Shown: positions 1,611 through 37,353 of the stretch, in pieces
How the letters are laid out: each line of letters opens with the position of its first letter
Numbering within the stretch: position 1 is the first letter of the stretch
DNA from: Pocillopora damicornis
Taxonomy: Eukaryota
Assembly (NCBI RefSeq): GCF_003704095.1
Contig: NW_020846447.1
Location: forward strand, 186,001-250,000
Direction: 5' to 3'
Length of the DNA stretch: 64,000 bases
Notes under the pieces: generated by a model
What the model was told of the DNA's origin: nothing
What the model saw: only the letters and a program-made list of their open reading frames with translations
Database searches by the model: none
Program-made: the position numbers and the translations under genes

Positions 1611-1830
1611 GTAACCATGACGGCCAATCACAGTAAAGTACCCTAAAGAACCAATGAGAACTCAAAAACCTACAAATTGACAAAAACGCGGGAAAACGCG
1701 AATGACTAAGGCGTGATTGGCTTACGTTTGCATCTGATTGGTTAAGAGAGTGGCGAGAGTTTTTTTTTGGACCAATCATAAAGCGAAGCAAAGCAAGGAT
1801 AATTCAGTCCCAAATTAGGTTTGGCACTCA
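1611..1830. mobile_element. CCAAT/ATTGG-rich interspersed repeat (MITE-like); second copy ~11051-11275
   Basis: Multiple CCAAT/ATTGG boxes and an aaacgcgggaaaacg core; resembles a common coral repeat as recalled, not database-checked. Confidence 0.5.
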
Positions 1831-2033
1831 AAGGGTCAAAGGGAGGGTAAACAACGATGGTAAGAGAACGTAATTATACTAACAGATACATGTTGGTTTA
1901 GTGAAAATCTAGGAAGTTTTGAGGAAAGAAATATTTCTAAGAAAACATTGAATCAGGAATGAAATTACGCACTTAAGGTTATTGCTGTTTTATTTTGCTT
2001 TTCTTTCCTTACGCTCATTTCCGGATACTTCGC

Positions 2034-2144
2034 CTGAGCCTCAGATTTTACCCGACCCCTCCCACGTCAGGGCTGATTTGCAACGTCTTTCGACCGACAC
2101 ATCATACACTGACGTGGGGAGGGTCGGGTGAAATCTGAGCTCAG
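2034..2144. repeat. Short foldback/MITE with ~36-bp inverted arms
   Basis: ctgagcctcagattttacccgacccctcccacgtcag (2034-2070) versus ctgacgtggggagggtcgggtgaaatctgagctcag (2109-2144). Confidence 0.85.
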
Positions 2145-2768
2145 TTAGTGATTAATTTGAAATTTAATACGGTTAATCGAAGGATTGTAATCGACCTCTT
2201 CGGTCCACATCATGTGTCGACTGTAGATGATGAGCAAATGTGGGAAATCGAGCAGGCTTTTGAGGTGGTTAGAGGCCGGTGATTGCACTGATTTTTGTCT
2301 TGGCTCTTATTCGTTTATCGAATTTTAACGTGCTCGAAGCTGGGAGGTGAGCGACATTTGGAAGCAGAAGAAATTCGGCGAAGTTCTGGAGGCTTTCGGC
2401 CCAGACGGTCCCAGGAAATGGCACGCCTTGTGTTTTTCCTTTGCCTTTGGAGAGGCGTCAGTGCAAAGTGGCGAATTAACCGTCCCCAAACCCCGCAAAG
2501 CTACTCGAGACAACACAGAAAAACGAAGGTAAGTGAACTTTATTTATCTGACTGTCATTAAGCGGATTTTGGGGATGAAATGTTACGATTTGCGGAATTT
2601 ATGAAACATTTCTTGGGATCACTTGCGTCTTGCCGAGATCGACCGTCGCAAATTACAAACAATGTACGTGTTCAACTAGCGTATCAAATAACTGACGTCA
2701 CACGGCCTCAAACCTGCAGGATTGTCTGCCTGTGGTGTACTTCATCGAGAGTGAAACATCGAGCCCTT

Positions 2769-3068
2769 TTAAGATGTTTAAAAGCATTCTTGTTTAGTTT
2801 GGTCAACCTACAGGGCCTGGAACCAACTAAAATGCCAATTACTTTTGGCCAAAAGTACGGCATCTGCAGTTACAGTGAATATAGACCAACACTCGGTAGA
2901 GGTCTTTATGGTGGGTATGCTTTAAAAATTTCAGACCATGAAAATATGTGCACCAGTGACTTTGGTATCAGTGACTCCTATGATTTTCATCAAGACTTCC
3001 GTACTTTCTTTACAAGGAAAACATAGTTTCTTGTTGATGATTATGAAGTCTTTTTGCTCATGAACTAG
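2769..3068 (+). pseudogene. Orphan TLDc-domain exon 2 paralog with in-frame stop
   Basis: AFLFSLVNLQGLEPTKMP...FFTRKT*FLVDDYEVFLLMN* aligns to AFLFSMVNPHGHEPTKIP...FFTGNSRFVVTDYEVFSLN* at 7874-8190; TAG at 3024-3026; no BTB exon upstream. Confidence 0.85.
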
Positions 3069-3098
3069 CATGTAACAACTGATGGCTGGGGTATATCT

Positions 3099-3323
3099 TT
3101 TAATCTTTTGACCCCTAAGGGTGATAAGCATTTAATTTCGCCTTACAATATCACCCCCTGAATCACACATTATTAATGTGTGAGGTTATGAGATTAAAGG
3201 AAATGATCACCAAATAAAGAAGCTCTAAATTTTTTGGAGAAATTCTCCTTGTCAGCACCTTAGGAAATGTTTAGAGAACAGTATGGAGAATTTGTACACT
3301 GATATTAGGGTGTAAAGGGTTAA
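3099..3323. mobile_element. TTAA-flanked (piggyBac-like) MITE, subfamily B; relatives at ~21659-21851, 57370-57553, 60550-60670
   Basis: Ends ...aaagggttaa; shared core aaattctccttgtcagcac...ggaaatgt...gagaacagtatggagaat. Confidence 0.7.
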
Positions 3324-3847
3324 TGAGTTGCTTTTCCTTTATCTAGTGCTTTTTTAGGCTCTAGGTTGATAAAAGGGAAAAGAAGGGTTGAGTTATGGGT
3401 CGAAAGGGGTATAGAAAATTATAAGTAGATAAATATTATGCTAAGGTTTTTTTTTTCTTCATCATGACAATAATCAAGTATTTGACTTTTCAACTTATAG
3501 CATACTGGTATTCTACTTCATGCAATAACATTGGCAAGTCTGTTATAGACAAGGACCACGTTGTTTGAAGCTGGGTTGAGATAAACCAGGGTTAGTTTGA
3601 AATTGGATTTCACATCTAAAAGCTGTAAAAGAAAATTCAGTTTGAATTTTTTTGTCTGCTGTTTGATGATTGAATGCTCTAAAAATGGTAGTGAAAATTA
3701 TCCAATAGAGGCTTTTGAACAAAGGAGTAAAGATGCTGGGATTAAAATTCAACCTTGGATTAGCACTAATTGGCCTTCGAACAACTGGGCTCTGGAGTCC
3801 ATTTGAAACACCTTATGTTGCTACAAGGTCGTAGTTTGCTGAATCCA

Positions 3848-4059
3848 TTCACCCTTTAACTTGCACAAGTGATCAAGACTGAATTTCTCCTTACAATATC
3901 AATACAATATCAAACAGACTAGTGATGAGAAATAAGAAAAATATTACAGGGGGATTATTAGTTGATCCAATACCAAATTTTCTGAACTAACATCATTAGA
4001 ATTGTATGGCAGACAGTAAGGAGAATTAGTAAATGGGATCTTGGGCGTGAAAGGGTGAA
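3848..4059. mobile_element. TTAA-flanked MITE, subfamily A; copies at ~18216-18400, 26063-26219 (reverse), 55228-55461
   Basis: accctttaac...gaatttctccttacaatatcaatacaatatc...gttgatccaataccaaatt...gacagtaaggagaatt...aaagggt shared among the copies. Confidence 0.85.
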
Positions 4060-4924
4060 AGGATACATAATGGGCAAAGAAGGGAAGGGGATGGCTGAGA
4101 TCATCCCTTATCCCTGATTGGAGTTTGAAGAGGAATAAGAAAAGGCTCATTAATCTATGTACTTTGTTTGGCAGTGGTCATTATAAATTTAGTTTCATGC
4201 TCTGGTGTTTAGAATTTGGAAAAAGAAAACTTTCAGAATCCATTCAAAGCATGATGATGTCACTATTTTTCAAATTTATTACAGTCCACTTACTGCCATA
4301 ATTCCTTCAAGTTGTAGGTTCCAATCTTCATGAAAATTAACATGTTAAAGGAGACATTTATTGCTTTTCATCCTGTAACCTTATATGCATGGACGTGAGC
4401 ACCACTTGTGCCTAGACTTCAAGTCTCAGTTAGTGGTCCTTTGTGTTTTTCACGTTGTATGTCAAAGGCAATCAAAGTCAAAGGTTAAGCATTTCTGAGA
4501 GCACTAGTAACTTCAGGACACAGTTGTTGACTCTCCCTTATGAAATTCCTGTGATAAGTCATATCATTTGTCTGGTCTTTATCAAGTGCTAACAGGGACA
4601 CATCATTTTTTCCCCTTTCTTACTGGAAACATCACCAATATTATGTGATGTGCTTCTGAATTACAAACAAGGGAAATTGTAACAGAGACAGTCTCAACTT
4701 ATTATAAGTTACTTGTAGGAAGTGAGCCTGCAGCTCACTTAGTACAAGTAATTCACCATCAGCAGACTCAATTGTGTATATTTGGGCTGCTAGTTGGTAT
4801 TCCCTTTGTTTGTAACATTAGTGTCTCGCTAGGCACTTAAGAGATTGCTAAGGGATTTAAGTTCCTACCCTCTCTCCGATGCTTTACCACTAAGCCACAG
4901 AGACTCTTTGGGGCTATGAATAGA

Positions 4925-5412
4925 GGGGGTAGGTTTCTAAAGAAATTGTGGTGCTGAGTCAGTGGGAGAGTATAACATGCTAATTTTGTATTATCAACTG
5001 TGTTGATAACATGAATTGGCCACCATAAAGAGTTTAAAAGCTGATGTTTCAAGGCTAGGGTTAGCCCTTTGTCTGAGTGATTAGAGAAATTGTGGGTTGT
5101 GTGTGGGTTTATATGTGGAAAATGGAGCTATGAATTTGGTGATTAAAAAACAAAAATAAATTAGTTGAATTAAAAGAGCTTGTTGATGCTGTGGGGATTA
5201 GGGTGCCAATTTGAAAGATAAATTTTTGTTCTCTTATTTTGCGGCTTTCGGAAGTGTCTAACTGTAGGGAAAGGCTGGAAACTTCCATGTGCTATTTAGA
5301 ATGATTAGGGAGATTAAAGTGTCTAGCGACTGGGTTGGATGTGCCCTTGTCATTAATTTCTATGTCGCAGAGGTGTTCTTGCACCACAGTTTCTTTAAAA
5401 AGTTACCCCTTT
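4925..5412 (-). mobile_element. Penelope-like retroelement 3' remnant (GIY-YIG C-terminus plus pLTR) with inverted terminal piece
   Basis: Minus strand reads EHLCDIEINDKGTSNPVARHFNLPNHSK*HMEVSSLSLQLDTSESRKIREQKFIFQIGTL; the caccacagtttct..agaaac.taccc terminus occurs in opposite orientations at ~4925-4955 and ~5382-5411. Confidence 0.8.
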
Positions 5413-6944
5413 TGTTGTCAATAGTATGTTTGTTTATTATCTGATTTTTAGGTTATATATTTAAATAGGAGTTTTATTTGTTACTGTAATTTAATAATAA
5501 AGGCTACTTTTCTCCAAAACTTTGCTTGTAGTCATGTTATGTGGTTTATATGCAGTGAAAACTATGATGTATTAGATGCATCACAGTCTTTAAAATTTAA
5601 TAGGGTTCTCTTGCGTGCTACACGGCAAAGAAATCAAATCCAATTGGCTGCAGGAAGTACTCAAGTTGCCAAGAGTTCCTTTTACAATCATGGCTGTACT
5701 GTTTATAATAATTTTTGTTCACATTAATTATCTTAATTGTATTTTTCCCATTTTTCCTATATATGTTTTAAATGTTTCTAAAGATGCTTTTTATGCATTT
5801 GTAATCAGAGTATATTTAAACTCAGGGGTCCTGTTGATAGCAGGGTAGTGTACTTTTGGGCTGCTGACAGGACTATTGGTTAATTTTTTAAATAAAGGTG
5901 CCCATCTGTCTATCTTTCTACTTGCAACTTTAAGTAAATTATTTGATTTTAAACTTGAGTTTTTTAAAAATAAATTTAGAGTCGTATTCATTCAATGTGG
6001 ATCAATAGTGTTCTTTTGATTTTCAAGAAGCCATATCATGTTTGCTGATTCGTAAAATGTCTTGTAAAAAAAGGGAAAAAATATTACTTGAGGCATGGTA
6101 AGGGAGCTTAATGCAAATAAAATGATTTTATCTTCCTTTAAGGCCCGTTCGTCCTCCAAGGCCTAAGTGCGGGTAGAAACTGAATTTACTCCATTGGTCT
6201 TCGCTGTCACAATCGGTTTGGGTATTCCCGCATTTTGGGTAATTTTCATTGCTCCACCCACTCAAGGATGGCAGCTATAATGTTCACCTACACATTACTG
6301 ACTTCTCGCCCGCCAAAATTACGTTTGCCTCGTAAGTTAGGAAAAATCAAGATGGCGAAAATCGATAAAATTTTTTTAACAGCTCTTCTCTCCAACTTCA
6401 CGACCTGACATTTGAAGAGTGCGCAACGGAAACGATCCCGTCGAACTCTCATCGATTATTTGATCTGATAAGAAAGCTTACATCCAAAACAAAGCTCAGG
6501 CTTACCTTTTAAGTGTATTTATTAGAGTGTGCTTCTCTAGTCACCGTTATGAGTGCCCGCGTTTTTAGAATACCTATTTTTCTTGTCTAGTCCAGTTCAG
6601 TACAGTTTGATTCAGTCTTCGATTCGAGCGTTCGGCATAATTTTAAGTGCAGAATCCTTTCTAAGAACTGGGTTAATTCATGAACTCTGGTAAAATCAGA
6701 CCAAATGACAGTTTCTTTTTGTCTTTTAGACCAATTTTTTTAGCATAAATGTAAACATTACCTCACGTGACCATGATAATTTTATTCATTCGACGAAGCT
6801 CGCCCACGCTGCATTTTCAGTTCTTCCTAGTTTGGTTAGCAAACAGTGAGGAGTGATTTCAAGCCTTGCTAAGGAAACGAATTACTTTTTAGCTTAAGAA
6901 AATCAAATTTTAGCGGCGATATACAGATACAGAAAGCAAGCAAC

Positions 6945-8190
6945 ATGCAGCAGGGTCAAAGAATATTTAGTTTTCCCTCGATTGTGAAACTAAATGTCGG
7001 CGGTCATTACTTCACCACAAGTCTTCAAACATTGACCAGAGATCCAAACTCAAAGCTAGCCGGCATGTTTTCAGGGAAGTTTGGGATGAACCGTCTTGAA
7101 GACGGCGCTTTCTTTATCGACCGGGATGGAACTCACTTCCGGTTTATACTCAATTATCTGCGGAACGGAGAGCTAGTTTTACCGGATGGTGCAAAATTTC
7201 TCAAAGAACTTGAAACTGAAGCGCAGTTCTACCAGATTGAAGGGATACTAATTAGGTTGAGCCTTTTTTCGGAGATACTCACGAATGAGGAACATATCAA
7301 CGTGCTGCTAGGTTGGCTGCCTTTCCATGACGCGAGGATGAGGCGACGTCGCCTCGGTCTTCTGTACCGTGCTTCTCGAGATGGCTTCGCAGCCGAATGC
7401 TTTCACTCCAGATGTGACAACAACGGGCCTACTGTTACTATTGTGAAGAGTGGAGAATATATATTTGGAGGTTTTACGGAGCAGTCTTGGACGAGTAAGT
7501 AGTAAATTAACTCAATCGGGTAGAAAATAATGGCTGATGATTTGAGTAGAAACGAAAGTTAAGTTAAAATTTTGGCGTGAAACAACGAAAAAGTCGGGTT
7601 CACTTCTTCGTGACTATAACACCGTTTTGCTAATCTCCCTTTCTTCTCTTAACGGCCTCAGGCCAAAAGTAATTTCGTAAGAAAACGCTTCAAACGGCCC
7701 ACGAAGGCGAACAAAAAAAACCACAAAGCATCGATTAACATTTCATTCAACTTTATTGAGATATTTATACCGAGATGTAATTTAGATATGCAATTTTCAG
7801 AGTCGTGGATTTTGTTTGTCTAATATCAGCAATAATTAACCACGTGATAAAAGGAACATCATCTCATCAACAGGTCAAAACCGTTACTTAAGTTGTACCG
7901 AAGCATTCTTGTTCAGTATGGTCAACCCACATGGCCATGAACCAACTAAAATACCGCTTACTCTTCAAGGCCAAGGGAATTTCATCTCATGTAGAGCTGA
8001 CCTTGGACCAACGTTTGGCGGCGAGTTTTACGGCCAGCATGCCCTAAGTATCTCAGACCATGCAAACATATCACACAGTGAGTCTAATAATAATTATAAC
8101 GTGTATAATTTTCTTCCAGAACGCGAGACTTTCTTCACGGGAAATTCACGTTTTGTTGTGACAGATTACGAAGTGTTTTCACTCAATTGA
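6945..8190 (+). CDS. BTB/POZ (KCTD-type T1) plus TLDc domain protein; exons 6945-7494 and 7874-8190
   Basis: IVKLNVGGHYFTTSLQTL, FFIDRDGTHFRFILNYLR (KCTD BTB); LLYRASRDGF..FHSRCDNNGPTVTIVKSGEYIFGGFT and TDYEVF (TLDc); phase-1 GT..AG intron restores the frame. Confidence 0.93.
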
Positions 8191-21800: not shown

Positions 21801-24800
21801 TACTGTTGGGAGAAATTAGATGATTATCACTCTTGGGAGTCAAAGGGTTAAGAACCGGGAAAGTAAGAAAAAGGTGGTATCTTACTTAAATATTTGTTTG
21901 GCGCCGGCGAAGAAGTCTTCTCGTTTTCTTCTCGCTGATTTACTTGGTGGTAGAGGAGGTTTGTTTGGGAAGTACATACAGACTAACAGGAAAAGAAAAA
22001 GAACAACGCCACATTCTGTAAAAAGAAAAAAAATAATATGATGAAATTAGCAAATGTACAAGCTGGCTTGATAAAAAATAATAGACGCTGATTTTGTAAA
22101 CTGAGGCTAACTCACCAACATATAGTAACATCATTATTTCTTTTTTTCCGTCCTTGAGTAGTCGCTGTTTAGCTGGAAATAAGAAGGAACAAAGTAATGA
22201 AACAAACATGTAACAGTAGTGTTCAAAATAAAAGTAATGATGACGATGATCACAACAATTGTAATAATGGTAAAAGTAGTAGAAAAGAAATACGGGATTG
22301 AAACAAACTTAATGACTAATGCCGGTTTTTCCTTTATTTCTGTCGGATATTAAGAACATTACAGTTCATTTCTGACAAAATACATTTTGTGATAACAACG
22401 CGGAAGAGGTTTCCACGAACAGGAGATCAGCACTAAAACGTTTTAGATGGACGAGGACACCGTCCAGCACTAACGCCGAAAACACGAGTCGTGGTCGCTT
22501 AAAATTCCTTGCTATGCAAGACAATTCCTTGCTATGCACCACAGTAATATGCGATGCTAACTTCTGGAAACAAAGGCAAACTTTGACAGGCATCAGCAAA
22601 TTTGCGTGTTTCACAAACCTCTCAAACTTCCGAAACTGATTGACAAGTAACCGTGTGCAATGCCAATACTAAATCGAGAAAACAGGTCGTGGAGCTTAAC
22701 AGACTGGACAGATGAAGGTTATCATATTGATGTAACACAAAACTCTCCTAATGATTTTACAGGGTCATGTATCTGAGCTGGAGGGGAGGGTGACAAATTT
22801 GACCCTTGGAGTCAAAACTACTGATAAGAGTCGAAACACACCTTCCTCTAAATCAGGAGTTATCCCGATGCCTGCAGTTCGTTGATAAATAGCTTCAATT
22901 TCCCTGGGATGAAGCTTTCTTTCCCACACTGCTAACTCGTCATACGCAGCTTTTGAAAAAGCATAGACATTATTTGGTCTTCCGAGAGTGAACATCGTGA
23001 AATAACTCCTCTCGAGTTGGGTGGTTTTCCCCTTTGGGTCCCCACCCACATAAGAACCATTCGAGTAAATCACAAGTCCTTCACGCTCGTCCCACGTGAA
23101 CGTCACGTGCGTCCAATTGCTACGTGGCACGGAGAAGCTTCGTTTCCATAGCACCGTGCCGTTTTCTACTTTAATGGCCAAGTGGTCTTCCTTGTCGTAA
23201 GGAAAATCTTGATAAATTAAAAATCCTTTAAGACCATCTCTGTTTCCGCTGGTCCCCATGAAATACTGCAGACCGTTAGCGTCCAAGATTTCATATTTCA
23301 TCCACAGCGCAACGGTAAAACCATTCGGGCACAGGGACGGGTCACTCACACAAGTGTTTATAAAAGGGCCAAGATTTACCCAAGCGCTTTTACCGTCAGT
23401 CATTAAACTCTGATTGACGACACCTTGTTCAGTGGTGCATTCATTGAATAAAAGTCCCTCCTTGTTCGTTTTAAATTCCCTGAGTCCTTTGTTGATTGTA
23501 ACTCTCCCATACTCTTCGGGATTTCGTAAATTGGTGCTATTTTCCTTCCTCTCTTTTCTGATGGATTGGACATTTTGAATGCTGATGTTCAGATTGTCCA
23601 AAGGCCAATAGTACATAGCATCTCGGTATATAGATTCTAAAAGCCAACAAAATAAAAAAAAAGTTAATTCAAAGAATGCTCCTTCGGGCTACCACTGAGA
23701 AGGATGAAAAAAAGAGTTATTGTCTTTGAGTAATTAGGCTTTATCGTTTGTCACTCGATGTAATGACTTCCAATTAGGATCGCGACGTTCCGACTGCTTA
23801 GTGCAAGTTCCCGGCTTTCAGGCGATGAAGTCGAATGGTTTACATAGGATGACTCTCGACTCTTAAAACCCTGAGAATTACAAGCATCTAATTTCTCTTT
23901 ACTTTAAATCTTCTGATTGTTAACTTTAAACTTGAAAATCAAGTTAGCTCACACAAAGTTTTTAAAACTTTGCAAAAAACCGATTCATGTTTTGTTGATA
24001 ACAACTATCCTGTCTTGCCGTTGAGCAGTTTCGTTTCTTACCTGAATATAAAGTGTTTCCATTGAGGTACAAATCTAAAGTATCACTATAAAAATCAAAC
24101 CAACAAAAAGGATATTAAAGTCTGTTTAAACACAAAAAATACTTCTTAATAAATTTTAAACATGAAGCTATCGATGAATGGCTCTAGAGCTAAGAAAATT
24201 TGGAGACGAAATTTTATTTATCAAAAGCGAGTGAATAGAGGTATGTAGTGAGAATTTTTGGTTTAATTGCGAGCTCTCCTTTAGGTACTCGATGCACAAA
24301 CCAAATAGACAAATGCCTACAAAACATAAAAAAATATTGGCCAAAAATTCTAAGCTATCTCTATCAGTCTATACGCAATAAAGGCTTACAAAGAAAGCTT
24401 TAAAAAATTAANNNNNNNNNNNNNNNNNNNNNNNNNNNNNNNNNNNNNNNNNNNNNNNNNNNNNNNNNNNNNNNNNNNNNNNNNNNNNNNNNNNNNNNNN
24501 NNNNNNNNNNNGGGTGAAAAATGATGTTTCGAGCGTCCAAGGTAAGGGGAATGCCTTATGAGAATCACATTGTTTTGCCCAAGAATGACTCGCAAAAAGA
24601 GCAAAATTCCACGAGTTTCGTTTTTGTGACAAATTATTTAGGTCACGACTCCCAAACTAAAGAAGACCATCTTCTTTTCCTTAAGCTGTGAAAAGAGAAA
24701 GCATGAATATTGCCGTCAAAAACCTTACCAGATAGCGTAGGACGGATCTGACGTCACACATCTTAATGCTGTTCCAACGAACATAAACGCACAAGAAATA

Positions 24801-27194
24801 AGAACACTCCGTCTTAGTCCTGTCAATCAAAAGGAACAATGGCTGTTGACATCAATCAGATAACGCTTTGCGCTGGATAAATCTTTATCCGGTAGATAGT
24901 GCAGTAAGTTTTGTTAACACGTATCTGCTGGATAGCGTTAACTGCTCATTGAGCACCCAGATGTTAAGATGATTAGGTACATTCCCAAAGACTCCAAATT
25001 TTTCTCAAGTTTGACAAAGACGCGAGCTTAGTCGAACCGTTTAACAAGTGTTTCGGTTAAAGGACCCAACAAAAAATCCCTAATAGTAAGTAAAAACTTC
25101 CAAAAGTAAGAATCATTAAGTTAAATCATATTATGATATTCACAATTGGCAATACATGTATACTATCGACTCTCCTGTTTTCCTATCACATTGGCTCAGC
25201 CAAACCTCTCAGTTGAAGCAATATTTTCAAGAGTAAGAAACCAAGGGCAGGCGGAAAGGGAGGGATCCAGGTGTGCAGGTGACCCTCCCCACTCTGAAAT
25301 CAATATGAAATCGCTTTGGCTTGCCCCTCATAACATTCATAGGTTACAAAGAGTACAATAACATCTATCTGCCCTTGCTTCCAACATGTGCATTTAGAAG
25401 CTGCCAGGCACAAGTTCAAACCCCGTTTAATCAATGAATTTACTATAATAATTTTGTTTGCAGTTCGCATACGAGGATCATCCTTTGAGATGCCACGCTA
25501 GGCCATCTTTCCAAAATAAGCGCTGCGTGACAACTTTAACCCTTTAAATTCCAGATACGATTGGCGTTTTATTTCTCCCTAAAACATCCAAACCCTATAT
25601 CATCGTTGAAGAATTACCTTTCTCATCCATCAACCAGGAGAAAAAAAACATTGAACATAAATAAGTGATAGGATCCATGCTAGCCAAGAAGGCAATTTCT
25701 GTGTTCGTCCAATTGAAAACCATTTTAGCGGTAGTAGCGATTGGCCCATACGTGTTCCACGCGCAGTACTGGCTAAAACTTATCACAGAGAATAACAGCA
25801 GGATATAAAAACGTCTTTTGTAGCTTTTAATCTCCACTGGGGGATCATCTGTAAGGTAAGATCCTTTATCGTCCGTAAGGAGCACTGTATCGGATGAAAG
25901 GGAGTCTTCAGCACGTTCAGGTGAGTATCGCTGAAGATCTGCAGAGAGTAAAAGAGAGAGAGAGAATTAAAAGTATTCATATGCATCTGATTCGGTTGAC
26001 GCGAACCTTTGCGGTACGTGAGGAAAGTAGACCCTTTCCAATTCTCCATACTTTCTGCCATATAATTGTTTTGATGTCACTTCAGAGAATTTAGTATTGG
26101 ATCAACTAATAATCTCCTCATAAACATTTTTCGTTATTTTTATCATTTGTCAACTTGATATTGTATTGATATAGTGAGGAGAAATTCTGCCCTGGTCACT
26201 CATTGAAGTTTTAGGGTTAGGCCCACCAACAAAAACATTGTAGCTCAATTGAAGTAAACACTCAAGAGAGACATTTTTCTTCGTCCAACACTCGCTTGTG
26301 ACCTATTTTAAGTCTACATTTTATCGTCAGATTTTCTAACGTTAGTCAAATCAGCCAATTTTTTAAAGGTCATTTATATTTTCTGCACATTTTATATTTC
26401 AAGGTGGCGCCGTAAGTTTGTTTGAGAGAGCAGTTCAAAGCCTTTGATTGTACTTTAGTAATAATTGGAGGGCTGGAGTATATTTTTGCACCAAAACAAC
26501 GGTGAATTATGACGCATGTTTTATTCACAAAATTCTTAGAGTTGACTTAGGCGTAGAATTTGTCAACTCTGGCGGGCAGAGTGCTTTGAGAGCCGTTTCC
26601 CTTGACCAACTAATTCAGCCAGATTGATTATAAAACTGAAAACCAAAACTCCATGACGAATTTTTTGATTACAAGGCACTGCAACAAATTACTTCATTTA
26701 AACAGGAGCTGTAAATAATTAACAGTTTTAACTTTCTCGAAGTGGTGACTGCGCCTGCAATTTTCAGGAGAGATTGGGTAGTTTAGCAACAGGGTTTTTG
26801 CAACAACGAACGTGATTCCTTGACGAAAACCAGACTATTTTCCTTGAAAAATGTCTTCTCACTCTTTGCTACCCAATCAGAATGGCAGGGGTTTTTACAA
26901 AGAAACAGCGATCGAACATTAAACCTCCCTCGAAAGTCTTTCAGTTTTTTCTTCCTCGCGATTTGTCACGCAAAGTTTCGTGACAACCGAAAAAAACTTC
27001 TGACTAATATTTTTGTTTCTTTCTTGTTTTAATTTTAATTTTCCACCACGCGTACCTTGAACGTGAGTACACTTCTTGGGTTTATAATCTTCCCTTCTCA
27101 CCCAGGGATCGTCAAGATCGACTTCCACTAATTCATTCTCTTCTGGATCTAGAAATGACTTGCGGTCCTCAGATTTTGAGCCGTTTGGGTACAT
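18891..27194 (-). CDS. SLC49A4: SLC49A4/DIRC2-like MFS transporter with inserted LamG-like domain. Exons 27194-27056, 25938-25618, 24819-24729, [gap], 24085-24042, 23636-22842, 22172-22116, 22015-21886, 21186-21140, 20778-20717, 20169-19983, 19723-19541, 19144-18891
   Basis: YKRRFYILLLFS, WNTYGPI, WLMDEKGLRRSVL, ALRC, IMMLLYVECG..YFPNKPPLPPS, GVYSGWG, EAGWIGF, IPLFYELTVESTYPVAEGVT, WMNWC, YRRLNLD; all visible introns are GT-AG with matching phases; TM4-5 exons not visible (presumably in the gap at 24412-24511). Confidence 0.9.
19365..19505 (+). mobile_element. Degenerate tRNA-derived SINE (second family)
   Basis: gtaattcagttggtag ... gtgttcaattcccctcgaagcctgatttttttt ... gaagatca. Confidence 0.6.
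22842..23636 (-). CDS. Exon encoding a LamG/concanavalin A-like (pentraxin-fold) domain, 265 codons, phase 1-1
   Basis: YYWPLD, CVSDPSLCPNGFTVALW, WTHVTFTW..EGLVIYSNG, TLGRPN, YDELAVWERKLHPREIEAIY; six N-glycosylation sequons; acceptor tttag|AA, donor G|gtgtgt. Confidence 0.88.
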
Positions 27195-29899
27195 CTTGGA
27201 ACCCCTGTCTGATACCAGCACGGAGCCTGTGAGAGAGATAACAATAAAAGTAAAAATGAAAAATCACCGTTCGGAGGCGCATTGTAAATTTTGTGAGTGA
27301 CAATTGTATCAAAGTAGTTGAAAAGCTAAAAGGAACATTTCCAGAAATCATCAGTAGGCCAGAAAGTCCACTCTTGAAGCTTAAGTTAAGATGCTTTAAA
27401 TGCTTTATTACGGGTACCTGTGAAAAATAAATCACCAAAATAAAACTCCATAAACAAAACTGCCGGGTCTTACATGACCCTACAAGGCCTTTTATCAGGC
27501 ATTTACATGCACAACATATCATCGAAAAAAACTTCAAAAACCGACCTTTCGATTATGACGCGAAACTATGAAAACACCCCATGATTTGTTTGCCACACAA
27601 GCGATAAGATATTTCGTTGGTGTGTTAAGATGCAATTAGTTGCAACAAGCGCTTCCAAGGTAATTGAACTTAATTTTGCATGCACGCAATGCTCAAACAA
27701 AAAATTTATATATATTTATTATATAAAACGATGTTCTTAAGAACAAGGATCATGTGGTGAAGTTTCTGGATCATTCCATGTCTTTCACGGTGAGTTAAAT
27801 ATAAACTGAACAGATGAATAAATTGGACTGATAAAAAATAAACCTTACCAATGAATATTTTTGACTGATATCAAAACTAGATGAAAACAACTCGGATATT
27901 TGCTCAAAGTACTTAAACCAAAAAAGCTCATGAAAGTTTTTCGATCTTTAAAGGAAGCTTACTCGAGCAAATCGACGTACAAAGTTCACTATTTGAAATG
28001 CTAAAATTAATCCATTACACTCTATTCTTGTTCAGAAACATGTATGCTATTATATAATACTTATTACGGCTGTTTTCCCACCGAAGCAAATCTGTATGGA
28101 ATTATATTCTTACCCCTATAGGCAGAAAACCTTCCCTTACAAGCATACTAAAGTTTTTAGGTCAAAAATTTGTTTCAATTCGGTGAAAAGAGTACGAAAC
28201 CGGCATTTTAAAATTTTCTATTTAAAATTACGCAGGCAAAATCGTCGACACGAAAATTGCAAATCTAATGTTTTTCACACAGCTAAACTTAATCTGAGGG
28301 TTTCTTAAGAAAGGAAAAGTTATAATTTCAAATCCAGAATATTTACCCGATGAGAGATTCCGGTTCTTTCACAAAGTACGCCTTCGGGAGATTACAGGAA
28401 ATCCATTGTCAAAAGCAAATCTATTTCTTAGCTTGTCTTTGCCACAACGCTCCAACGCCTCGTATCATCAGTCCTACAAAACTTTGCCCTGTTAATCCGA
28501 TTCAAAAATCCTTTGCATTTATTCCACGACATAATCGTTTGTCCTGACAGTATTCGGCAGATTGTTGTTGCGGAACAAAGGTTTAGGTTATTTTTTACCC
28601 CGAAGTAGATATTGTTCTAAATTTGCATGGAAAGGGCGAAACAAGTTGTGAAAACAGAAGATGATTGACAGCAATAGTAAGGGGAAAGTTTTGATTGGTC
28701 ATTTCAACAAAGAGCGGGCTTTCCACGTGTGACCTGCGTGATGACGCAACCGTTATTTTTGTCACGCATACAATCATTAAAAACGTTCCTAAAAGCGAAC
28801 AATCATCTCACAACTTATATACGGGAATCGTTATGGAGAATCCACCAAAAATCCCACGAAGTGAGTTCCAACGTGATTCTAGAAATGCTAGTTTCTCATT
28901 AAATCGATAATCGACAGATTTCCTTAGGCCTCGGCCTTACAGAGATCAATATCCAAGGACTGTCAAGAATGGCATTAATAAGAATTAAGATTTTGAACTG
29001 TGTTAATTCTTGATCTAACTGAGACGAATTAATGACACTTGCCAGTTTTTAAGAGGAAAGGAGCCTCAGTATTTTGAATTTAATCTCAGTTAAGAATTAT
29101 TTTTGTCTAAATGGTACTCAAGATTAAGAGTGTTTCATGGTAACGGCCGCTTAATCATTTTCAGGGGGCGGCGTCTGTCAGATGTTTTTGTCAGTGCTTT
29201 ATAAATTAAGTGCGGAAAACATTCAGAACGAACTAGATTTGAATGAAAATCTGCATATCATTGATAAACCGCCTGTTGAGTTGAGTACGGACTACTGACT
29301 ATGGAATCGGAGTGAGGGGTAAAGCATTATTTATCAAATACACGGGGAAAGTTATTACAAAGGCTCTCCGATTATCAAGAGAAGACGTAGTGAAATGTCC
29401 GCTTTTCCAAGGTCATACTAACCTAACACAAAAAGCCTCCGACAAAACGTTAAATTGAACGTAAACAAAGCTTTTAACCCCTCTAAGCTTGGTCAACCAT
29501 AACACTTAATCATTGCACAGACATCTTTAAGCGTTTAAGGTCCACTTCGTGTAACTTTTTTCGTTACATTTGACGATGGGTTATGGTACACTATCTGCAC
29601 TATGGTTGTTAGACATCTAATTTACCAAGTAAGCCGGAAAAGTTTGGAAATGTTTTTAAGTTCTTCACTGATATGCTGAACTGACCTTGGAATTAGGACT
29701 CTATTTTTTTAGTTAAATCTTGAATCAAATCAAATATTTCTAGCCTACGGCTAGTGGTTCGGTTGAGTTTTGGACTTTACCAAATTTGCGTAATGCCACT
29801 TCACAATCTGTGAGAGTGTTGAAACTGTTTTTATTTTAGAAAGAGAAGGAAACGTCAGAGAAATTTTCCAGTTTATGGCTGATTTTGTTTCGTAACGTA

Positions 29900-30570
29900 A
29901 GTGAGAAAAACTTGCGCATCTTCAAGGAGCGAAGAATCAAATCATGTGTCCTGCGTTCAGGTCCTTTGCTATTTGTTTGAAATGCTCAATAGTCGAACCA
30001 AAACACGAAAAACAACAGGAAAGTGCGCGACCTTTCAGTTTCATCTACTACTAATGCTACACTAAGTAGAAAATCTCTTTCAATTGACAGTTTTCACTTC
30101 CTCTCCCCGCTTCGTAATCTTTTTGTATTCACGTGCGGAGCGCGTGCTTTCACAAATTAGTTAATCACGTTAACCAAAGAAATCTAACCTTGACATTGGA
30201 GAACTGACGTGGACATTGTTCGTGTACTTTTAGTTCGTTTTCGCGGAGTTTTAGTTAAATGTTTTGGAAATTAGTTAGATTGCTTGGAAATTTACGATGT
30301 TTCGGAGTTTTTTTTTAATCCAAATCTTGTGGTTCATTTAACAAGTTTAATACATATTTTTACGGAGTTTGGACCCTAGTCTCTTTTTTCGGAAATGGAT
30401 ATTTTAAAATTTGAGGGAGAAACTCGTGCGTGTTCAAGGAGCGAAGAATCAATTCGTGTTGCTCGCGTTCAAGGCCTCTGCTCTTTGTTTGAAATACTCA
30501 ACAGCCGAATCAAAACACGAAAAAATGCGCAAGAAAATGAGCCACCTTTCAGTTTCATCAATTACTGACG
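29900..30570. repeat. ~160-bp diverged direct repeat (~29900-30057 and ~30411-30571)
   Basis: ttcaaggagcgaagaatcaa, tttgtttgaaat.ctcaa, aaaacacgaaaaa and acctttcagtttcatc shared in the same order. Confidence 0.85.
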
Positions 30571-31012
30571 CAAGCATTCAGCAATCTCAAGATATCGTTT
30601 TGAACATTTACTTCACTGGTGTATTGAAAACCATCTAAAAATCAGTGTTGCATACAAGATTACATATTTCTGTCACAAAACTCACCCCAAGGCTACTTCG
30701 ATGAAAAAATAAGTGGGACATACAAACCTTTCTTTACAGTAGACACCATCGGTGACAAATCGCATTTGACTTCATTCGCCTCATTTAACGGAGCAACGCT
30801 TGAGCGCATTTTGTAAAAAAAACGACGAAATTGTCCTTAAATTCTCGCAAAAAGAGAGTAGCTCTCATCCATCGAGTTTCATCGCGATACTCGCTTTCGA
30901 AGCCATTCAATCTATGGAAGACCCGACAATAAATATATGACTAATTCAGCTACTAATTTCTTAATTAGTATTCATGATTTTCATTACGTCATAATTATTT
31001 ATATGGCATCAT

Positions 31013-31703
31013 TAAGGGATGTTGACATGGAGGTGGGGACCCCAGGTAGGTGAGGTAACCCGCCTAGGTGGGGTAACCCGCTTGTTCATAGAATTTCTTA
31101 TTTTATCTTGATCACGTTTACATGATAGGTGGGGTGACCCGCCTAGGCGGGTTGCCCGGTCTGCCAGGTTGAGTAATCCTGTCAGCCGGGGTGACAATTT
31201 GCCATGTAAACGTCCCAAGGTGGGGTGACCCGTCTAGCCGGGGACGCTTTCATGGCAAAAAAACCCGAAAGTGAAACACGTATGCTTTAAAACTTTGTAC
31301 ATTTCTTAGCCGTCTCACGCCAGAAATCACCAGAAACCGCAACGGACACACAGAGTGTAAAATGTTCACATTTCGAAATATTTAGCGTTGTAAATCGACC
31401 ATATTTCAAACTATTCCTTATAACGTACCAAGTTAACGGTTCCTCGCGTAACCTAACACCGCGTAACACAACGCGTGACACTTTCATGAATAAATACATA
31501 CGTATCCGGGAATTAATCTTTCGTCTTTCTCGAGACTTGAGCATGGGATGCCTTTGCTCAAACTCCCTAATTGGAAGTGCAACAACAGCCTCAGCACAAC
31601 GGGGTTGTAAGATTGTATGTAGACGCGTTTTGTTTTTCGACCACGGCTAGGCGGGTTACCTCACCTACCTGTGGTCCCCCACCTCCGTGTAAAAAGGCCC
31701 TAA
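31013..31703. mobile_element. MITE with ~55-bp TIRs and GGGGTAACCCGCC internal repeats (PIF/Harbinger-like), with a nested foldback fragment
   Basis: acatggaggtggggaccccaggtaggtgaggtaacccgcctag versus ctaggcgggttacctcacctacctgtggtcccccacctccgtgt; TTA/TAA flanks. Confidence 0.8.
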
Positions 31704-34700
31704 AAAAACGGCCATTGTGTTTAATTTTCGAAAGGCGCCGCGAGGGAATTGTGCACACAACAGGAGATACAGTTTTGTAGGAGGAAATTCTCCTAAGTCT
31801 ACAAGTAAGACATTTCAAGATATCAAAGCCTATTTATTATGTAAATTTTATACATTTTTTAATTGAGAAAAATAAATCTCTTACGAGATAAGTTGGCCTA
31901 GTTTATGCGCTTAAAACACTGTGCTAATATTCAAAATAATTCGAGAGATCTTTGAAGACCTTTCCTCTTCAACAGCGATTTTTTCATTTTAATCGACAGA
32001 GATGAAAAGAAAAAAAAATGGCGAGACTTCCACCTTAGCCCAGCTTGCGCACGGCCATTTTTATTTCGTCTTTATCTGGAACTCATTTCACACAGAGTAC
32101 GTGCTATCATTCGGGATCAAACCTGGCTTATGCTCTTTCCCACATATCAGATCATATAGAGAATATTGAATTTTATGATTATGTCAAGGACTTCCGTTTC
32201 AGTTTAAACTATTTTTAGTCGCTTTGAAAGGCCGCGGTGAGAACAAAAAAGTTCTCGCTCTTAAAACTCTGAATGTCAAAGATTCGAGAACGTTGGATAT
32301 TGGTATTGTTTTTTTTTATTTAACCTTCACCTTCACTTGCCTGCCACGTGCCAAGGTGTGGAATTCTAACTGTATAGACAGGTGATAATTTTCCACTTAA
32401 TATGTTATCAGCCTCAGTTAAATTTACGGAGACTCCTCGCAACGATTTTGAGACATTCTTTTTGATAGTCACCAAATATTGACTGTTCCATGCAGTCAGT
32501 GTATAGGAAATCAGTAAGAACTGGAATTTATTTAAAATATAACTTTATGCCCGATTCATTCTTTTCAGTCATCTCGTAACTGTTAAGGAAAAATCGAGAT
32601 GTTTTGCGAATCTTGACGTTATCTGTGCACCAAAAAAGTCGCGCTGTGTCACAACATTTAATGCTGCAAGTAAGATCTGACAGTGGAGAAAATTATCATA
32701 GATAAGTAGAAACAACCAGTTCGAGCAGTCAGTCACAATTTGTTTGAGAATAAGAACAAAATCAGATTATCTCGCTTGAAATGATGCGAATTTATTGCAG
32801 TATTTTCAAGTTGGTTTTTAGGTCTATGAAATATTAATCCTTGAATTTCAACTAGACTTTATTCACCGATTTCGGAAAGTTGTGACGTGCTCAGACGCAA
32901 AATGAAAATTTTCAGAAAAACGTTTGGCTGAGGAAAGAAAAACACTTTGACCCATGCACAATCAGCCTGTCACGATTACTTGCGTCAGAGGACTTAGTTT
33001 TAAAAAACTTGCCCGGGATCGTGATGTCATTCGAATGACTGTCAATGCCGAGGTCACAGAAGGAAGGCGTCACGGACCAATCAAACACAATCACGTTTTT
33101 GATGGACACTGAGGTCAGTTGTAAAGATTGAGTAACAACCGCTAAGGGCTGCGGCATGATATTAAACTAACATGAATCGTACTAATGTTTTTAACAGGAT
33201 ATGCCAAAGAGGAAACGCTACCCATATAGCTTGTGAACTTTGATCTAAAATCACTTAGGAATTTGCAGAACAGAATTCACAAGTTTTAATTGAGCAAAGG
33301 CGAAGAGTCTGTTTGACCCACTGGAATAGCCCCCTGTTAAAATAAAGGAGCACCTCCCGCGATTTTTCACGTGCACAATATTTCATATTGAATGGAAGGA
33401 ACAGAATATTGCTTTCTTTTAACACCAAATCCTAGGTATTTTCTTCTACTTTCAATTGGATTCTAGACCTTGTACCACACATAACGGATGTCAAAAAATC
33501 AGAGAAAGCGGAAAATCAGAAATTCCGATCTCAAACAAAGACAAATTGTAAAGAACATAAACTTGCGCTCTGTAACATAACAACCACGTGACTTTAAGTA
33601 AGGAAACACTCGCTGACGGTATAGTTTCACGTGGAATTTTTAACCAAAGAACGAGACGGTTTATTTTGACAATTATTTTCAATAAAATTCCTTTTTAACA
33701 GGTTCACGGTTTTAAAGGGCATCGATCAAATAGTTTGAGAACAAAGAATTGATAACAGAAAGATAATGTGACTGGAAACGTGAAGAGTATAACAATTCAA
33801 CGTCATTCCTGGTCACTGCCAAATTGTCTTTGCTGCTTTTCCAAGTGAAAAGAACGTGGAACGAAGTGGGATGTTGTCGAAAGATTATCCGTAATGTTAC
33901 CGCTGCCTAAGAATTCTCTGGTATGTTTTTTCGTCTGAGTAAGGCAATAAGAAAAAGAAAAATTTCCAGCGTTATCGAAGCCAATTTCATATCTCCACAC
34001 CTGACAGGTCAATCAAAAGCCTTTTCAAAAGAAATGACAGCCATTTCGTGCTTTAAAAACACCGACCTCAAATTTTTTCAAGAAACAAGAATCACTGGGG
34101 TTTTCCTTTTTAATGTTGACGCGATCTTTGACCGCATAAGAATAGAATTTTGCGTTTGATGTGAAGTTTAACTCACATTTTGCGCACGCAACATCTGTTT
34201 CGAGTACGTCGCGCCCGGTCAGTCTAAAGTTATTGTAGGAAACAATGTCACATCTCTTACGCCGCGAGTGGTTTTACCTTATGTCTTTCACACATGACAA
34301 ATACATTAACGATTTTTCTCCCAGCCGTTAAATTAAAGAAGGCGTTCTGAGGTGGCTCTGGAAAAGCGAAATATGGAATCCAGTGTTAGATAAAAACAAA
34401 AACGAGAAAAAAAAAACACGAAAAGGGTTTACAGAGAATCCAGAATGGAAATCAAGTGTTGAACCTCAGGGAAACGCTGTGAACAAAGAAAACCCGCGAA
34501 GATGTTTCTAACGACGTTAAGAAAGTGTGGGTGTTTAGGGAAGGAAGGGTATGTGACCTTTAATAATATTATTCTCTCTTACAATACAAATAATCCGCAG
34601 GGTATAGATTAGAGCTATCAACAAATCTTCTCGAGCCTCAACTCGCGTGACGTTGTGAATGCTGACAGGTTTTGTCTGTTTCTTTTTATCTTATAAAAAC

Positions 34701-37353
34701 AAAGATTTTTTTTCTAATTCGTCCATCGATTTCTCCGACTCGTAACAAAGGCTCTCTAATTCTGAAGAAAAGTTAGCCATAAAAATAGCGAATTTAATAC
34801 CAAATAGGTTTTCACAAACACCTGTAATCTTACAAATCGCTGCACAGCAATGATTGTGCAATTTAGAAGACCATTAATAAGCTAAAATACTCACGCTTAA
34901 GACTAAAGTATTTTCAACTTTTATCGGGTATGTTTTCAATGTAAACACAGACTGTCAAGAGCTTTCTTAACAGTAGAGCGCGGTATAAACACTATTCCTG
35001 AATCCGTGATCTAACATTTCCCGTTTCCCTCGACATTTTCCGCTCCCTGGGGAACACAGTAGGACATTAATAGGGTTTTACCGATTAATGACAAAGGTTT
35101 CGAGGTTGATGCCTTTACGTCGCTTTTTGAGGTTGCGTGGAAAGGTTAAATAATTTAAGATAATGCCCTTCGAGTCTGGACGGTGTGCCTTTAATGGATA
35201 CAACAAAAAAACTTATTCCTGACGAACAACGATTAAACGAATATCTTTAATTCACGGCTATGACCATATCCTTGGCAATATTTTGCACTCCAGTTGTTGT
35301 GCCCATGGTGAACATACAGTGAATAATTTTCAGTCATATCTTTCCCATGTAACATAAACAAAGCCTCGACCCAAAGTAAAGTTTTCTTTTAACCAGAGAG
35401 GGAGTAAAAGCTGTTTATTTTCGAGCCATATACGAGATAACTTCAGTACAATCCAAGTATAACAATAAAAACTCGTCCCGTAAGATCTGGGCAAACACAA
35501 ATTATGTGCAATCATCATGCAACAAACATTTTTACATCGCTTTGGTAATAACCTTGTGGCACAATACCCAAAAAGATTTTATAAAATCCGTTCTACGGTT
35601 GGACTAAAAAAATACACCAGCTTGAATAATCCAAAGTCATTTGAGAACTTTCTACATCGTTTTATCACATCATGAGCTTTTAAATTGTACTCAGCATTGC
35701 GTGTAGTCAGGAGTGTATATGCCATCCACGTATTGTTTTTATTCGTCGAGCATAATATTTATTCTCTACAAGAAATGAAAAATTAGTTGAGGTGACTCAC
35801 CGTTTAGGTTTCTCTCTGCTCTCAATCCAGTGAAAAGCCATTGTTTTTTCCTCCGACGGAGAGATTGCCCAGAGAGTCGTTTTAACTTCGCTTCTTTTGA
35901 TCTTATTTCAGGAGCCATTTCCTGGGATCGAAAATGCTTTCAAGTTTACTCAGACCGGCTTCTGTGATTATTTAAAAGAAAAAGATAAACTGTAATAGAA
36001 TCTTGGCGGAATAAGACCATCAACTTATGGAAATTGACAAAAAAATAATTTTGATTGTGTCATTCCGTCAATTCTTTTTTACCAACCGTGTTTTAAGAAA
36101 TTGGCTCTCGACCTTTACCTTCGCGGAATCCATAACAAAACCCAATTTTTCAGTGTTTACCATATTTCATCACGTTACAGTAATTTCCACTGTTTTTATT
36201 CGCCCGTATTTATTCAGGCTCATTGAACGAATGGAATATTTTTCCGGCAATCTTTAGTTTGGGAAATCGAGTTTATTGACGTAATTGGATGACTCAAATC
36301 GATCTCGACTTCTGTTTATGGATGGAAACCTCTACTTCCGACAACTTGCAAGCTCACATCACTTCGCGCACGTAGGGAGTTCGTTGAGCTAAATATAGAT
36401 AGGCTGGGGTATCCCTTGAGCGGAATTTTTTTCAATACCTCCATTCATGAACACAAACGAAAATTGGTCAAAATTTCCCTTCAGGCGCGAGCGAAGCGTA
36501 TTGCACAGACGGTATTCGTGAAGATAAAAATATTGCCGCATCTAAACGTTGTAAGCACTGATCAAAAGTCTCTTGATTCGTTGTGGATTCAAACACATGT
36601 TCTGCTCTTCAATTAACCCAGAGGGAATTTAATTTAAAATTGTATCTAACAAAGAGAAATCTGCGATGGTTACTGGAGCGCTTACCTGAGAATTTCCATG
36701 CAGAGGGAAACTCGGTAAAATTAAGCTGAAAAAGATTTCTGTGCGAAGATCATGCAGCTGATTCTCGCAATCCGACCAGGCCTGCACAACACTGACAAGC
36801 TTTGAGGGTCGCACACCACAAAGTAAATTGATATCAATTTCCAGTTGCCCAATATCCGAGCTGGCCGGACGCGCGCTATGGGGTTAACGCACTTTCAAAC
36901 GACCAACCCTGGCGTTGCAAGATCGATGCTAACAAAACAGCTGATCGAAAATATTACAACAAGCCTGCAAGTGTCGTGAAGTGTAGCATTGGCTGCACGG
37001 ATATTCATGGGTTGAATCAATAATTTATTCCAAGTCAAGGTTGTAACCAAAATTTGCATCTGCTATACAATGATATCGCTTTTTGGGAATGACGCAACAG
37101 TTCTCTAGGAATCGAACGATTTTGAGCTTGACTAATCAAAGATTTCATTTTTTCAACTTTGGCGATTTGTTTTGAGCTTTAGTACTATTTTGAAAACGCA
37201 AATCAACAACAGATGCGCCTGATTGCTTTTATTCCTTGTTAGAGGTAAGTGAAAAGGTTTTTGTCACGCGTCACACCATCTTGTTAGGTAAATTTGGCCC
37301 AGAACAACTCCTCGTACGAGGAGGACTGGACCAATTCTAGAAAAAATTTCAAA

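Follow-up and report, generated by a model that had tools for sequence, protein, structure and literature searches.

The coral Pocillopora damicornis encodes a transporter from the major facilitator superfamily (MFS) that carries a whole Laminin_G_3 (LamG) domain between transmembrane helices 5 and 6 (TM5 and TM6). The domain lies on a single 795-nt exon at 22842-23636 on the minus strand of the window, meaning the whole stretch of 64,000 nucleotides analysed here (NCBI RefSeq assembly GCF_003704095.1, contig NW_020846447.1, positions 186,001 to 250,000), and the gene LOC113678599 uses it constitutively as coding sequence. A first-pass annotation of the stretch had proposed an exon-shuffled chimera of a transporter and a lectin fold, and transcripts, database proteins, the genomes of two other species and structure prediction all support the anatomical core of that proposal. 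The explanation favoured here is a carrier resembling SLC49A4, also called DIRC2, with the LamG module as a luminal domain built in cis and encoded by a constitutive exon; taken as a whole, it is given a probability of about 0.8. Confidence in the architecture and orthology as described is very high.

A constitutive coding exon

The LamG exon is open throughout, is bounded by canonical AG and GT sites and has phase 1 at both ends. Its minus-strand acceptor at 23636 reads ...ttttag/AATCTATA... (also printed ...ttttag/AATCTATATACCGAG..., with the slash marking the exon boundary), and its donor at 22842 reads ...GAGGAAG/gtgtgt, the exon ending in TTAGAGGAAG/gtgtgt. At its 5' end it joins a 44-nt exon at 24042-24085 in frame (..N-T-L-Y-S, split E, S-I-Y-R-D), and at its 3' end it joins a 57-nt exon at 22116-22172, again in frame (..P-D-L-E-E, split A, K-Q-R-L-L). 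The frame is also preserved if the exon is skipped (24042>22172). The chance of a 265-codon open frame in DNA of 40% GC is estimated at about 1e-5 or less.

The translation of the exon matches the Pfam family Laminin_G_3 (PF13385) with an E-value of 3.1e-18 and 66.8 bits, against a cut-off of 27.6, over profile positions 9-150 of 151. A motif scan finds the six N-glycosylation sequons that the first-pass annotation had counted (NIS, NST, NQS, NGT, NWT and NGS) as well as its CxxDPxxC motif, present as C-V-S-D-P-S-L-C. The two cysteines, C95 and C102, are invariant in a 45-sequence alignment (A3) and in 12/12 fusion proteins, and they are predicted to form a disulfide. Membership in the pentraxin family (PF00354) was rejected, as the Pfam Pentaxin profile scores 16.2 bits (E 0.0086) against a cut-off of 25; the resemblance is at the level of the fold only.

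Splicing was examined over positions 18800-24411 of the window in the RNA contigs of X1, X5, X10 and X14, four runs that each come from a different study. Both joints of the LamG exon, 22172<>22842 and 23636<>24042, occur in 4/4 runs with CT..AC on the plus strand. The junctions that the first-pass annotation had singled out for checking (24042>23636 and 22842>22172) are therefore present throughout, and its description of an open, phase 1-1 exon with in-frame joints on both sides is borne out by sequence and RNA alike. A single 3643-nt contig of run X10 combines the last exon, 19540-19715, 19983-20169 and the LamG exon, and extends 1338 nt further upstream of the latter, a length that could hold the entire N-terminal half.

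When the exon by itself was used for an exhaustive HMMER search, the best match was P0001, an 850-residue open reading frame (ORF) of a 2954-nt Logan contig with 98% identity, in which the LamG segment occupies residues 281-544, between the MFS halves. Pfam detects MFS_1 in P0001 at 94.6 bits (cut-off 33.4), in three stretches that flank the insert on both sides, together with Laminin_G_3 at 62.5 bits. P0161, of 900 residues, is a second whole-ORF transcript of this kind. The 90% cluster of P0001 includes XP_027051300.1 of P. damicornis ('uncharacterized protein LOC113678599', 900 residues) and XP_022784399.1 of Stylophora pistillata ('FLVCR2-like'/'DIRC2-like', 902 residues). The former is 100% identical to the window over every visible exon by tblastn, which identifies the window as the LOC113678599 locus.

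Two other accounts of the locus turn on these same joints. The LamG exon could be a regulated cassette, a use also suggested by the first-pass annotation, in which case substantial skipping would produce a short-loop DIRC2-like carrier beside the long form. Its symmetric phase makes skipping frame-neutral, and for the loci of Stylophora, Nematostella and Dendronephthya NCBI lists two protein isoforms, X1 and X2. The contigs of the four runs, however, hold both inclusion joints in every run and no skip joint 22172<>24042, both Stylophora isoform accessions have one identical protein sequence, and the matches of a search over 5.8 billion clusters include no LamG-less protein close to P0001; such regulated skipping is improbable. 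The exon could instead sit in a separate nested gene, with TM5 spliced straight to 22172, or the locus could be mis-assembled at a run of 100 Ns at 24412-24511. This run coincides with the expected place of the TM4-TM5 exon (residues 235-314, about 240 nt), and tblastn finds no match to those residues of XP_027051300.1 anywhere in the window, so that this exon is not visible there. Yet the ORFs P0001, P0161 and P0178-P0181, each from a single transcript, combine LamG with exons from both sides of the gap, spliced joints connect LamG to both adjacent MFS exons, and no transcript in the four runs takes TM5 directly to 22172. The genome of another species (L014, 56-83% identity per well-aligned exon) presents the same exon order without a gap: the TM3 exon, a 255-nt TM4-5 exon, a mini-exon, the LamG exon, a second mini-exon and the TM6 exon. 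A mis-join of two loci is ruled out, since the exon order is kept across the gap both in ORFs from single transcripts and in this second genome, and the N run hides the TM4-5 exon. A nested gene or a mis-assembly accordingly retains almost no likelihood.

Fold, topology and ancestry of the insert

AlphaFold models the LamG exon, using the 45-sequence alignment, as a beta sandwich of about 17 strands that ends in a helix (mean pLDDT, the predicted local distance difference score, 88.3; pTM, the predicted template modelling score, 0.87). Its structural neighbours were retrieved with VIA, a search independent of Foldseek. The nearest, at Z 18-20 over about 190-210 residues, are the N-terminal (HCN) subdomain of the clostridial neurotoxin binding fragment and the arabinan-binding domain 4 of AbnA. 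These are followed by sialic-acid-binding CBM40 modules and the LamG-like module of PAPP-A (Z 14-15), by pentraxins (Z 12-14), and by the PTX-like domain of ADGRG4 and neurexin LNS domains (Z about 11), and a profile search of PDB sequences agrees with these neighbours. At 10-19% identity, they show a resemblance at the level of fold and family and do not constitute proof of sugar binding. Clostridial neurotoxin binding domains lead the matches in Foldseek as well as in VIA; a relationship to toxins was considered and rejected, as the HCN subdomain, with 10-16% identity to the coral domain, has a jelly roll of the LamG_3 type of its own.

The model of the full P0001 protein (pLDDT 76.7, pTM 0.63) has 12 long helices, with TM5 at residues 214-242, TM6 at 540-578 and the beta sandwich between them. 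The linker that precedes the sandwich (254-285) is modelled with low confidence (pLDDT 50-67), and the helix that begins at residue 540 passes unbroken into TM6. In Foldseek, FLVCR2 and FLVCR1 can be superposed on the MFS part with target-normalised TM scores of 0.84-0.91 (8qcy 0.91, with a root-mean-square deviation of 2.9), and phmmer matches P0001 to FLVCR2 (E 1.5e-31) and FLVCR1 (E 2.2e-29) in two stretches that flank the insert. These two proteins (SLC49A1/2; PDB 8qcs, 8qcy and 8vzn) are the best solved relatives of the MFS part, with phmmer E-values of 1e-27 to 1e-31; in contrast to the coral protein they have no inserted domain, they are choline/ethanolamine carriers according to their PDB titles, and identity in the structural alignment is about 14%. 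By both Pfam and fold, P0001 belongs to the MFS and has an FLVCR-like 12-helix fold. The topology of MFS proteins is invariant, with both termini in the cytosol, and by this topology the TM5-TM6 loop faces the lumen or the outside. Six sequons of the loop, of which two precede the domain and four lie within it, are kept in position in 9-12 of 12 orthologues, and their conservation fits such an exposure. The arrangement that the first-pass annotation had described, an SLC49A4/DIRC2-like MFS carrier whose TM5 and TM6 are separated by a LamG jelly roll, is borne out.

The first-pass annotation had also called for a search for the combination of MFS_1 and Laminin_G_3 in cnidarians, and the search with P0001 found this build in several species that form one clade. 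It is present in Oculina patagonica (81% identity), in Desmophyllum pertusum (80%, 'Solute carrier 49 member 4'), in four further transcript ORFs (68-72%), in Nematostella vectensis LOC5511917 (57%), in the octocoral Dendronephthya gigantea (50%, 'SLC49A4-like') and in P0184, an 878-residue transcript ORF (45%). Stylophora has it as well, the transcript ORFs of this build number five apart from P0184, and all cnidarian orthologues found have it. The nearest insert-free proteins are bilaterian SLC49A4/DIRC2 homologues of 485-622 residues (E about 1e-115), sampled from Ptychodera, Branchiostoma, Owenia, several molluscs, Clavelina and Amphibalanus. LamG is absent from every one of those sampled, and their TM5-TM6 loop measures about 20-60 residues, against a loop in P0001 that spans residues 243-539, approximately, and is thus far from short. 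The insert is likewise absent from the four SLC49 paralogues examined in the P. damicornis genome. When only the LamG region of P0184 was used to look for homologues, nothing but the query itself came back, which adds nothing on distribution, and an ESM Atlas look-up of P0184 gave generic MFS clusters at a score of 0.80 and no cluster combining MFS and LamG.

In a quick maximum-likelihood tree of full-length sequences, the LamG-bearing proteins form one clade with an SH-like approximate likelihood ratio test (SH-aLRT) support of 100. Its branching mirrors that of the species, and P0184 branches off outside both of the anthozoan classes that were sampled. When LamG is removed and the tree is built on 223 MFS-only columns, the clade is retained (SH-aLRT 97.3) and joins bilaterian SLC49A4 at 98.3, apart from the four LamG-free coral paralogues. 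Those four loci share a further trait, a single exon that spans TM4 to TM8, and they group apart from the SLC49A4-like clade. LamG-free loci of the SLC49 family lie in tandem at G000:C2509:511514-514933 and 521102-522652, and others are on C698, C1267, C2024 and C804. An ENA genome contig (L003:10001-12415) bears an intronless SLC49A4-like ORF of 804 residues with an N-terminal extension of about 340 residues, a faint DUF5855 match and a TM5-6 loop of about 22 residues without LamG.

The boundaries of the LamG exon and its phase 1 are identical in three genomes, those of Pocillopora, L014 and L004 (ag/(A)N...G/gt). At the shared acceptor, two bases of a codon for D or E remain ahead of S-I-Y, and the shared donor cuts a codon after its first base (..K-G or ..E-E, with G/gt next); in L004, which comes from a relative of P0184, the LamG exon is followed by the TM6 exon. 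Identity over the LamG core is 54% to Nematostella, 41% to Dendronephthya and 32% to P0184, and 37 positions, including both cysteines, are invariant across 12 fusion proteins. On this sequence comparison the domain has evidently been under purifying selection since its insertion. At least 14 other LamG_3 modules are present in the Pocillopora genome as single open frames of about 190-290 codons with at most 35% identity, and the occurrence of such single-open-module domains elsewhere in the genome fits an origin by exon shuffling. No recent donor can be named because the closest LamG paralogue in the P. damicornis genome is only 33% identical. Taken together, the evidence indicates that exon shuffling brought the domain, once and long ago, into the TM5-TM6 loop of an ancestral SLC49A4, in the ancestor of cnidarians or at least in that of anthozoans. 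This single insertion predates the split of Hexacorallia and Octocorallia, and it is probably earlier still.

Two groups of other proteins with folded modules invite comparison. The remark of the first-pass annotation that MFS carriers rarely hold a whole folded domain is fair as a generalisation and not absolute, since SV2, PepT1/2 and SLC22 have such domains. SV2A-C, with a luminal domain in the TM7-8 loop, and PepT1/2, with two Ig-like domains in the TM9-10 loop (PMC4597091), resemble the coral protein in carrying a folded non-transport domain in an outward-facing MFS loop, where theirs is a platform for binding proteins. They differ in using other loops and other folds (pentapeptide-repeat or Ig-like as opposed to a ConA-like jelly roll), and none of them belongs to SLC49. 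Adhesion GPCRs (ADGRD1, and ADGRG4 with its PTX-like domain, 8b55) and the multi-LamG proteins of cnidarians share PF13385 and the same cysteine-pair motif with the coral domain at 25-35% identity, but their LamG domains lie in the ectodomains of receptors or in secreted proteins, outside any transporter loop.

The gene model and its surroundings

The exons of LOC113678599 were derived from tblastn, RNA joints and a check of splice sites; the joined model corresponds to the database proteins P0001 and P0151, with which the window was compared exon by exon. All coding exons are on the minus strand. The first, at 35799-35918, encodes residues 1-40 of XP_027051300.1 (MAPEIRSK...) in the cytosolic N-terminal tail and matches P0151 at 100% over 40 residues by tblastn; this N-terminus is also found in Stylophora, Desmophyllum and transcript ORFs. 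Coding exon 2 (about 27057-27236 by tblastn, with an approximate 5' boundary) continues the tail. Intron 1, at 27237-35798, measures about 8.5 kb, against 100-700 nt for the other introns. The end of the tail, with a D-T-V-L-L dileucine-like motif, is encoded together with TM1 and TM2 at about 25616-25939 (100% by tblastn, with a motif scan; boundaries approximate), and helices 89-153 of the P0001 model correspond to this exon. The TM3 exon lies at about 24728-24820 (100% by tblastn, boundaries approximate), ahead of the N run.

Downstream of the gap, the 44-nt mini-exon at 24042-24085 encodes the luminal linker before LamG (D-T-L-D-L-Y-L-N-G-N-T-L-Y-S) and is flanked by AG at 24087-24086 and GT at 24041-24040, with its RNA joint in 4/4 runs. 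The LamG exon at 22842-23636 encompasses the whole Laminin_G_3/ConA-like jelly roll of about 260 residues, as judged by splice sites, Pfam, RNA in 4/4 runs and AlphaFold. The 57-nt exon at 22116-22172 (A-K-Q-R-L-L-K-D-G-K-K-E-I-M-M-L-L-Y-V) encodes a luminal helical extension and the start of TM6, based on its splice sites, RNA in 4/4 runs and model helix 540-578. The next exon, at 21886-22015, supported by tblastn and canonical sites, completes TM6 and enters the central cytosolic loop (..YFPNKPPLPPS..). TM7 begins on the exon at 21140-21186, placed by RNA joints and refined to CT..AC, and continues on that at 20717-20778, placed by RNA joints and the splice-site check. RNA joints, tblastn and splice sites together define the TM8-TM9 exon at 19983-20169, the TM10-TM11 exon at 19541-19723 and the last coding exon at 18894-19144, which encodes TM12 and the cytosolic C-terminal tail and is followed by the stop codon at 18891-18893. 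The exon lengths from 24085 to 18894 sum to 1756 nt, an exact fit to residues 315-900.

Several other features were recorded along this stretch. The first 8 nt of the exon at 19541-19723, positions 19716-19723, differ at equal length in X5 and X10 and match the window in X1 and X14, which is probably an allelic or sister-species variant at the acceptor end rather than alternative splicing. Within the intron that separates the exons 21140-21186 and 21886-22015, the stretch 21432-21807 reaches a summed word depth of about 1000-8000 in the RNA contigs, against 20-500 on exons, and dozens of loose contig ends fall at 21604, 21664 and 21701 in 4/4 runs; it looks like a dispersed transcribed repeat. 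Beside a further N run at 16552-16651, a 118-codon ORF on the minus strand at 16694-17050 (..VVFKRKTLPKDL..VWDSFRAHL..) looks like a fragment of a DDE transposase of the pogo/Tigger type.

Location, role and significance of the luminal domain

The favoured role for the carrier is drawn from its closest relatives. Human DIRC2/SLC49A4 is a lysosomal, H+-driven pyridoxine exporter (PMC9719028). The coral and human proteins are both 12-helix SLC49 carriers of the MFS, SLC49A4/DIRC2 is the name given to the full-length proteins nearest to the coral one, the acidic dileucine motif of the human N-terminal tail has a candidate counterpart in the coral tail, and the TM5-TM6 luminal loop of both bears N-glycosylation sites. 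The vertebrate DIRC2 loop is reportedly short, with one glycosylation site, and is said to be cleaved by cathepsin L, whereas the coral loop extends to about 300 residues and contains a folded LamG_3 jelly roll. A motif scan finds DxxLL or D/ExxxLL 20-25 residues before TM1 in nine hexacoral orthologues and ExxPLL in the SLC49A4 of Ptychodera and Branchiostoma, the human motif being E10RQPL14L15; no dileucine-like motif was found in the tails of Dendronephthya, P0184 or Amphibalanus. By analogy with DIRC2, the coral protein would export a small metabolite, coupled to protons, from an acidic endolysosomal compartment, to which the conserved N-terminal acidic-dileucine-type motif would target it. 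On sequence and analogy, an endolysosomal location with proton-coupled export is the likeliest role, and it is held with reasonable though clearly lesser confidence than the architecture.

Within such a compartment, the LamG module would be a luminal accessory domain built in cis. It may be a glycan-covered shield that also stabilises the luminal face, the part that GLMP plays for MFSD1. GLMP, a heavily N-glycosylated beta sandwich, covers the luminal face of this lysosomal MFS protein and guards it against proteases (PMC11252000). Functionally, the pair is the best analogue of a lysosomal MFS carrier that bears a glycosylated jelly roll on its luminal side; GLMP differs in being a separate single-pass subunit with an unrelated beta sandwich that contacts the C-domain, while the coral domain is in cis and in the TM5-6 loop of the N-domain. 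Alternatively, the module may bind a glycan or protein of the lumen, possibly in a way coupled to the movement of TM6, an equally plausible role. The C-terminal helix of LamG is predicted to run into TM6 and could therefore influence gating. Any one specific role for LamG is at best tentative. A stronger version, in which LamG would be a luminal ligand or glycan sensor coupled mechanically to the transport cycle, that is, a transceptor, is doubtful. Export would in that case be switched on or off when a luminal glycoconjugate binds, for example one from digested prey, microbes or symbionts, and if this were true, the protein would be an ancient cnidarian ligand-gated lysosomal or phagosomal carrier, with a regulation undescribed for SLC49 or other lysosomal MFS carriers.

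Two further proposals place the protein at other membranes. It could be a transporter-receptor of the cell surface, with LamG working outside the cell in reception or adhesion, in the manner of adhesion GPCRs. The nearest non-fusion relatives of the domain are in adhesion GPCR ectodomains (P0032, with LamG_3, GPS and 7tm_2; ADGRD1, E 1.3e-9), other near relatives are in giant multi-LamG proteins, the solved relatives FLVCR1 and FLVCR2 act at the plasma membrane, and the dileucine-like motif is missing from two fusion orthologues. On the other side, the closest full-length relatives are named SLC49A4/DIRC2, with a lysosomal human member (PMC9719028), and a D/ExxxLL-type motif is kept in the tails of hexacoral orthologues and deuterostome SLC49A4; a surface carrier is unlikely, if somewhat less so than a transceptor. 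The first-pass annotation had also named the symbiosome as a possible site, and the domain could have evolved for, and act mainly at, the symbiosome membrane, for example by recognising algal glycans. Lysosomal machinery is reportedly co-opted there, according to a preprint (bioRxiv 10.1101/2025.10.09.679812), and the fold is common to carbohydrate-binding modules. Against this, the architecture is older than the hexacoral-octocoral split and than the coral-algal symbiosis, and the main text of an Aiptasia symbiosome proteome preprint does not name SLC49, DIRC2, FLVCR, MFS or laminin. The insert is also kept in Nematostella, Desmophyllum pertusum and Dendronephthya gigantea, and because these symbiont-free species have it, the symbiosome proposal is weakened and becomes very unlikely, slightly more so than regulated skipping of the exon.

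The reading of the gene as an endolysosomal SLC49A4-like carrier with a constitutive luminal LamG domain has its own difficulties, and the following points count against it. RNA was compared at the level of contigs, which drop rare variants, and a minor skipped isoform could escape. The trees are unrooted and were built without FLVCR or SLC49A3 sequences, and SLC49A4 orthology draws on best matches, source-given names and an unrooted grouping. With a full-model pTM of 0.63 and an N-terminal linker modelled at low confidence, the orientation of LamG relative to the MFS core is uncertain. A predicted fold common to carbohydrate-binding modules does not establish lectin activity. Finally, short motifs such as dileucine arise by chance, and the targeting motif is absent from Dendronephthya and P0184.

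The gene models are already public in NCBI, some under SLC49A4-like names, and the sequence itself is not new. A search of the literature for SLC49A4 with laminin G, or for the gene and protein accessions, found no paper that describes the architecture. A study of Tubastraea reports DIRC2-annotated unigenes enriched in the whole colony relative to the oral fraction, and these cannot be tied to LOC113678599. The practical value is modest and consists of a better annotation for proteins now called 'uncharacterized' in Pocillopora and Nematostella, together with a defined construct for work in Nematostella or Aiptasia. The chimera is a conserved and experimentally approachable oddity that overturns no concept.

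For the family, it is of interest that SLC49A4/DIRC2 was recently deorphanised as a lysosomal vitamin B6 exporter and that the contribution of its luminal loop is poorly understood. Cnidarians present a natural experiment, having held a lectin-fold domain in exactly this loop since before the hexacoral-octocoral split, and the gene shows cleanly, and in a form that can be dated, the shuffling of a phase 1-1 exon into a membrane protein of polytopic build. Should LamG act as a shield, it would do in cis what GLMP, OSTM1 and other accessory subunits do as separate proteins. Should it instead bind a ligand, the export of metabolites would be tied to what the lumen contains, in the digestive and phagosomal system on which these intracellularly digesting animals rely.

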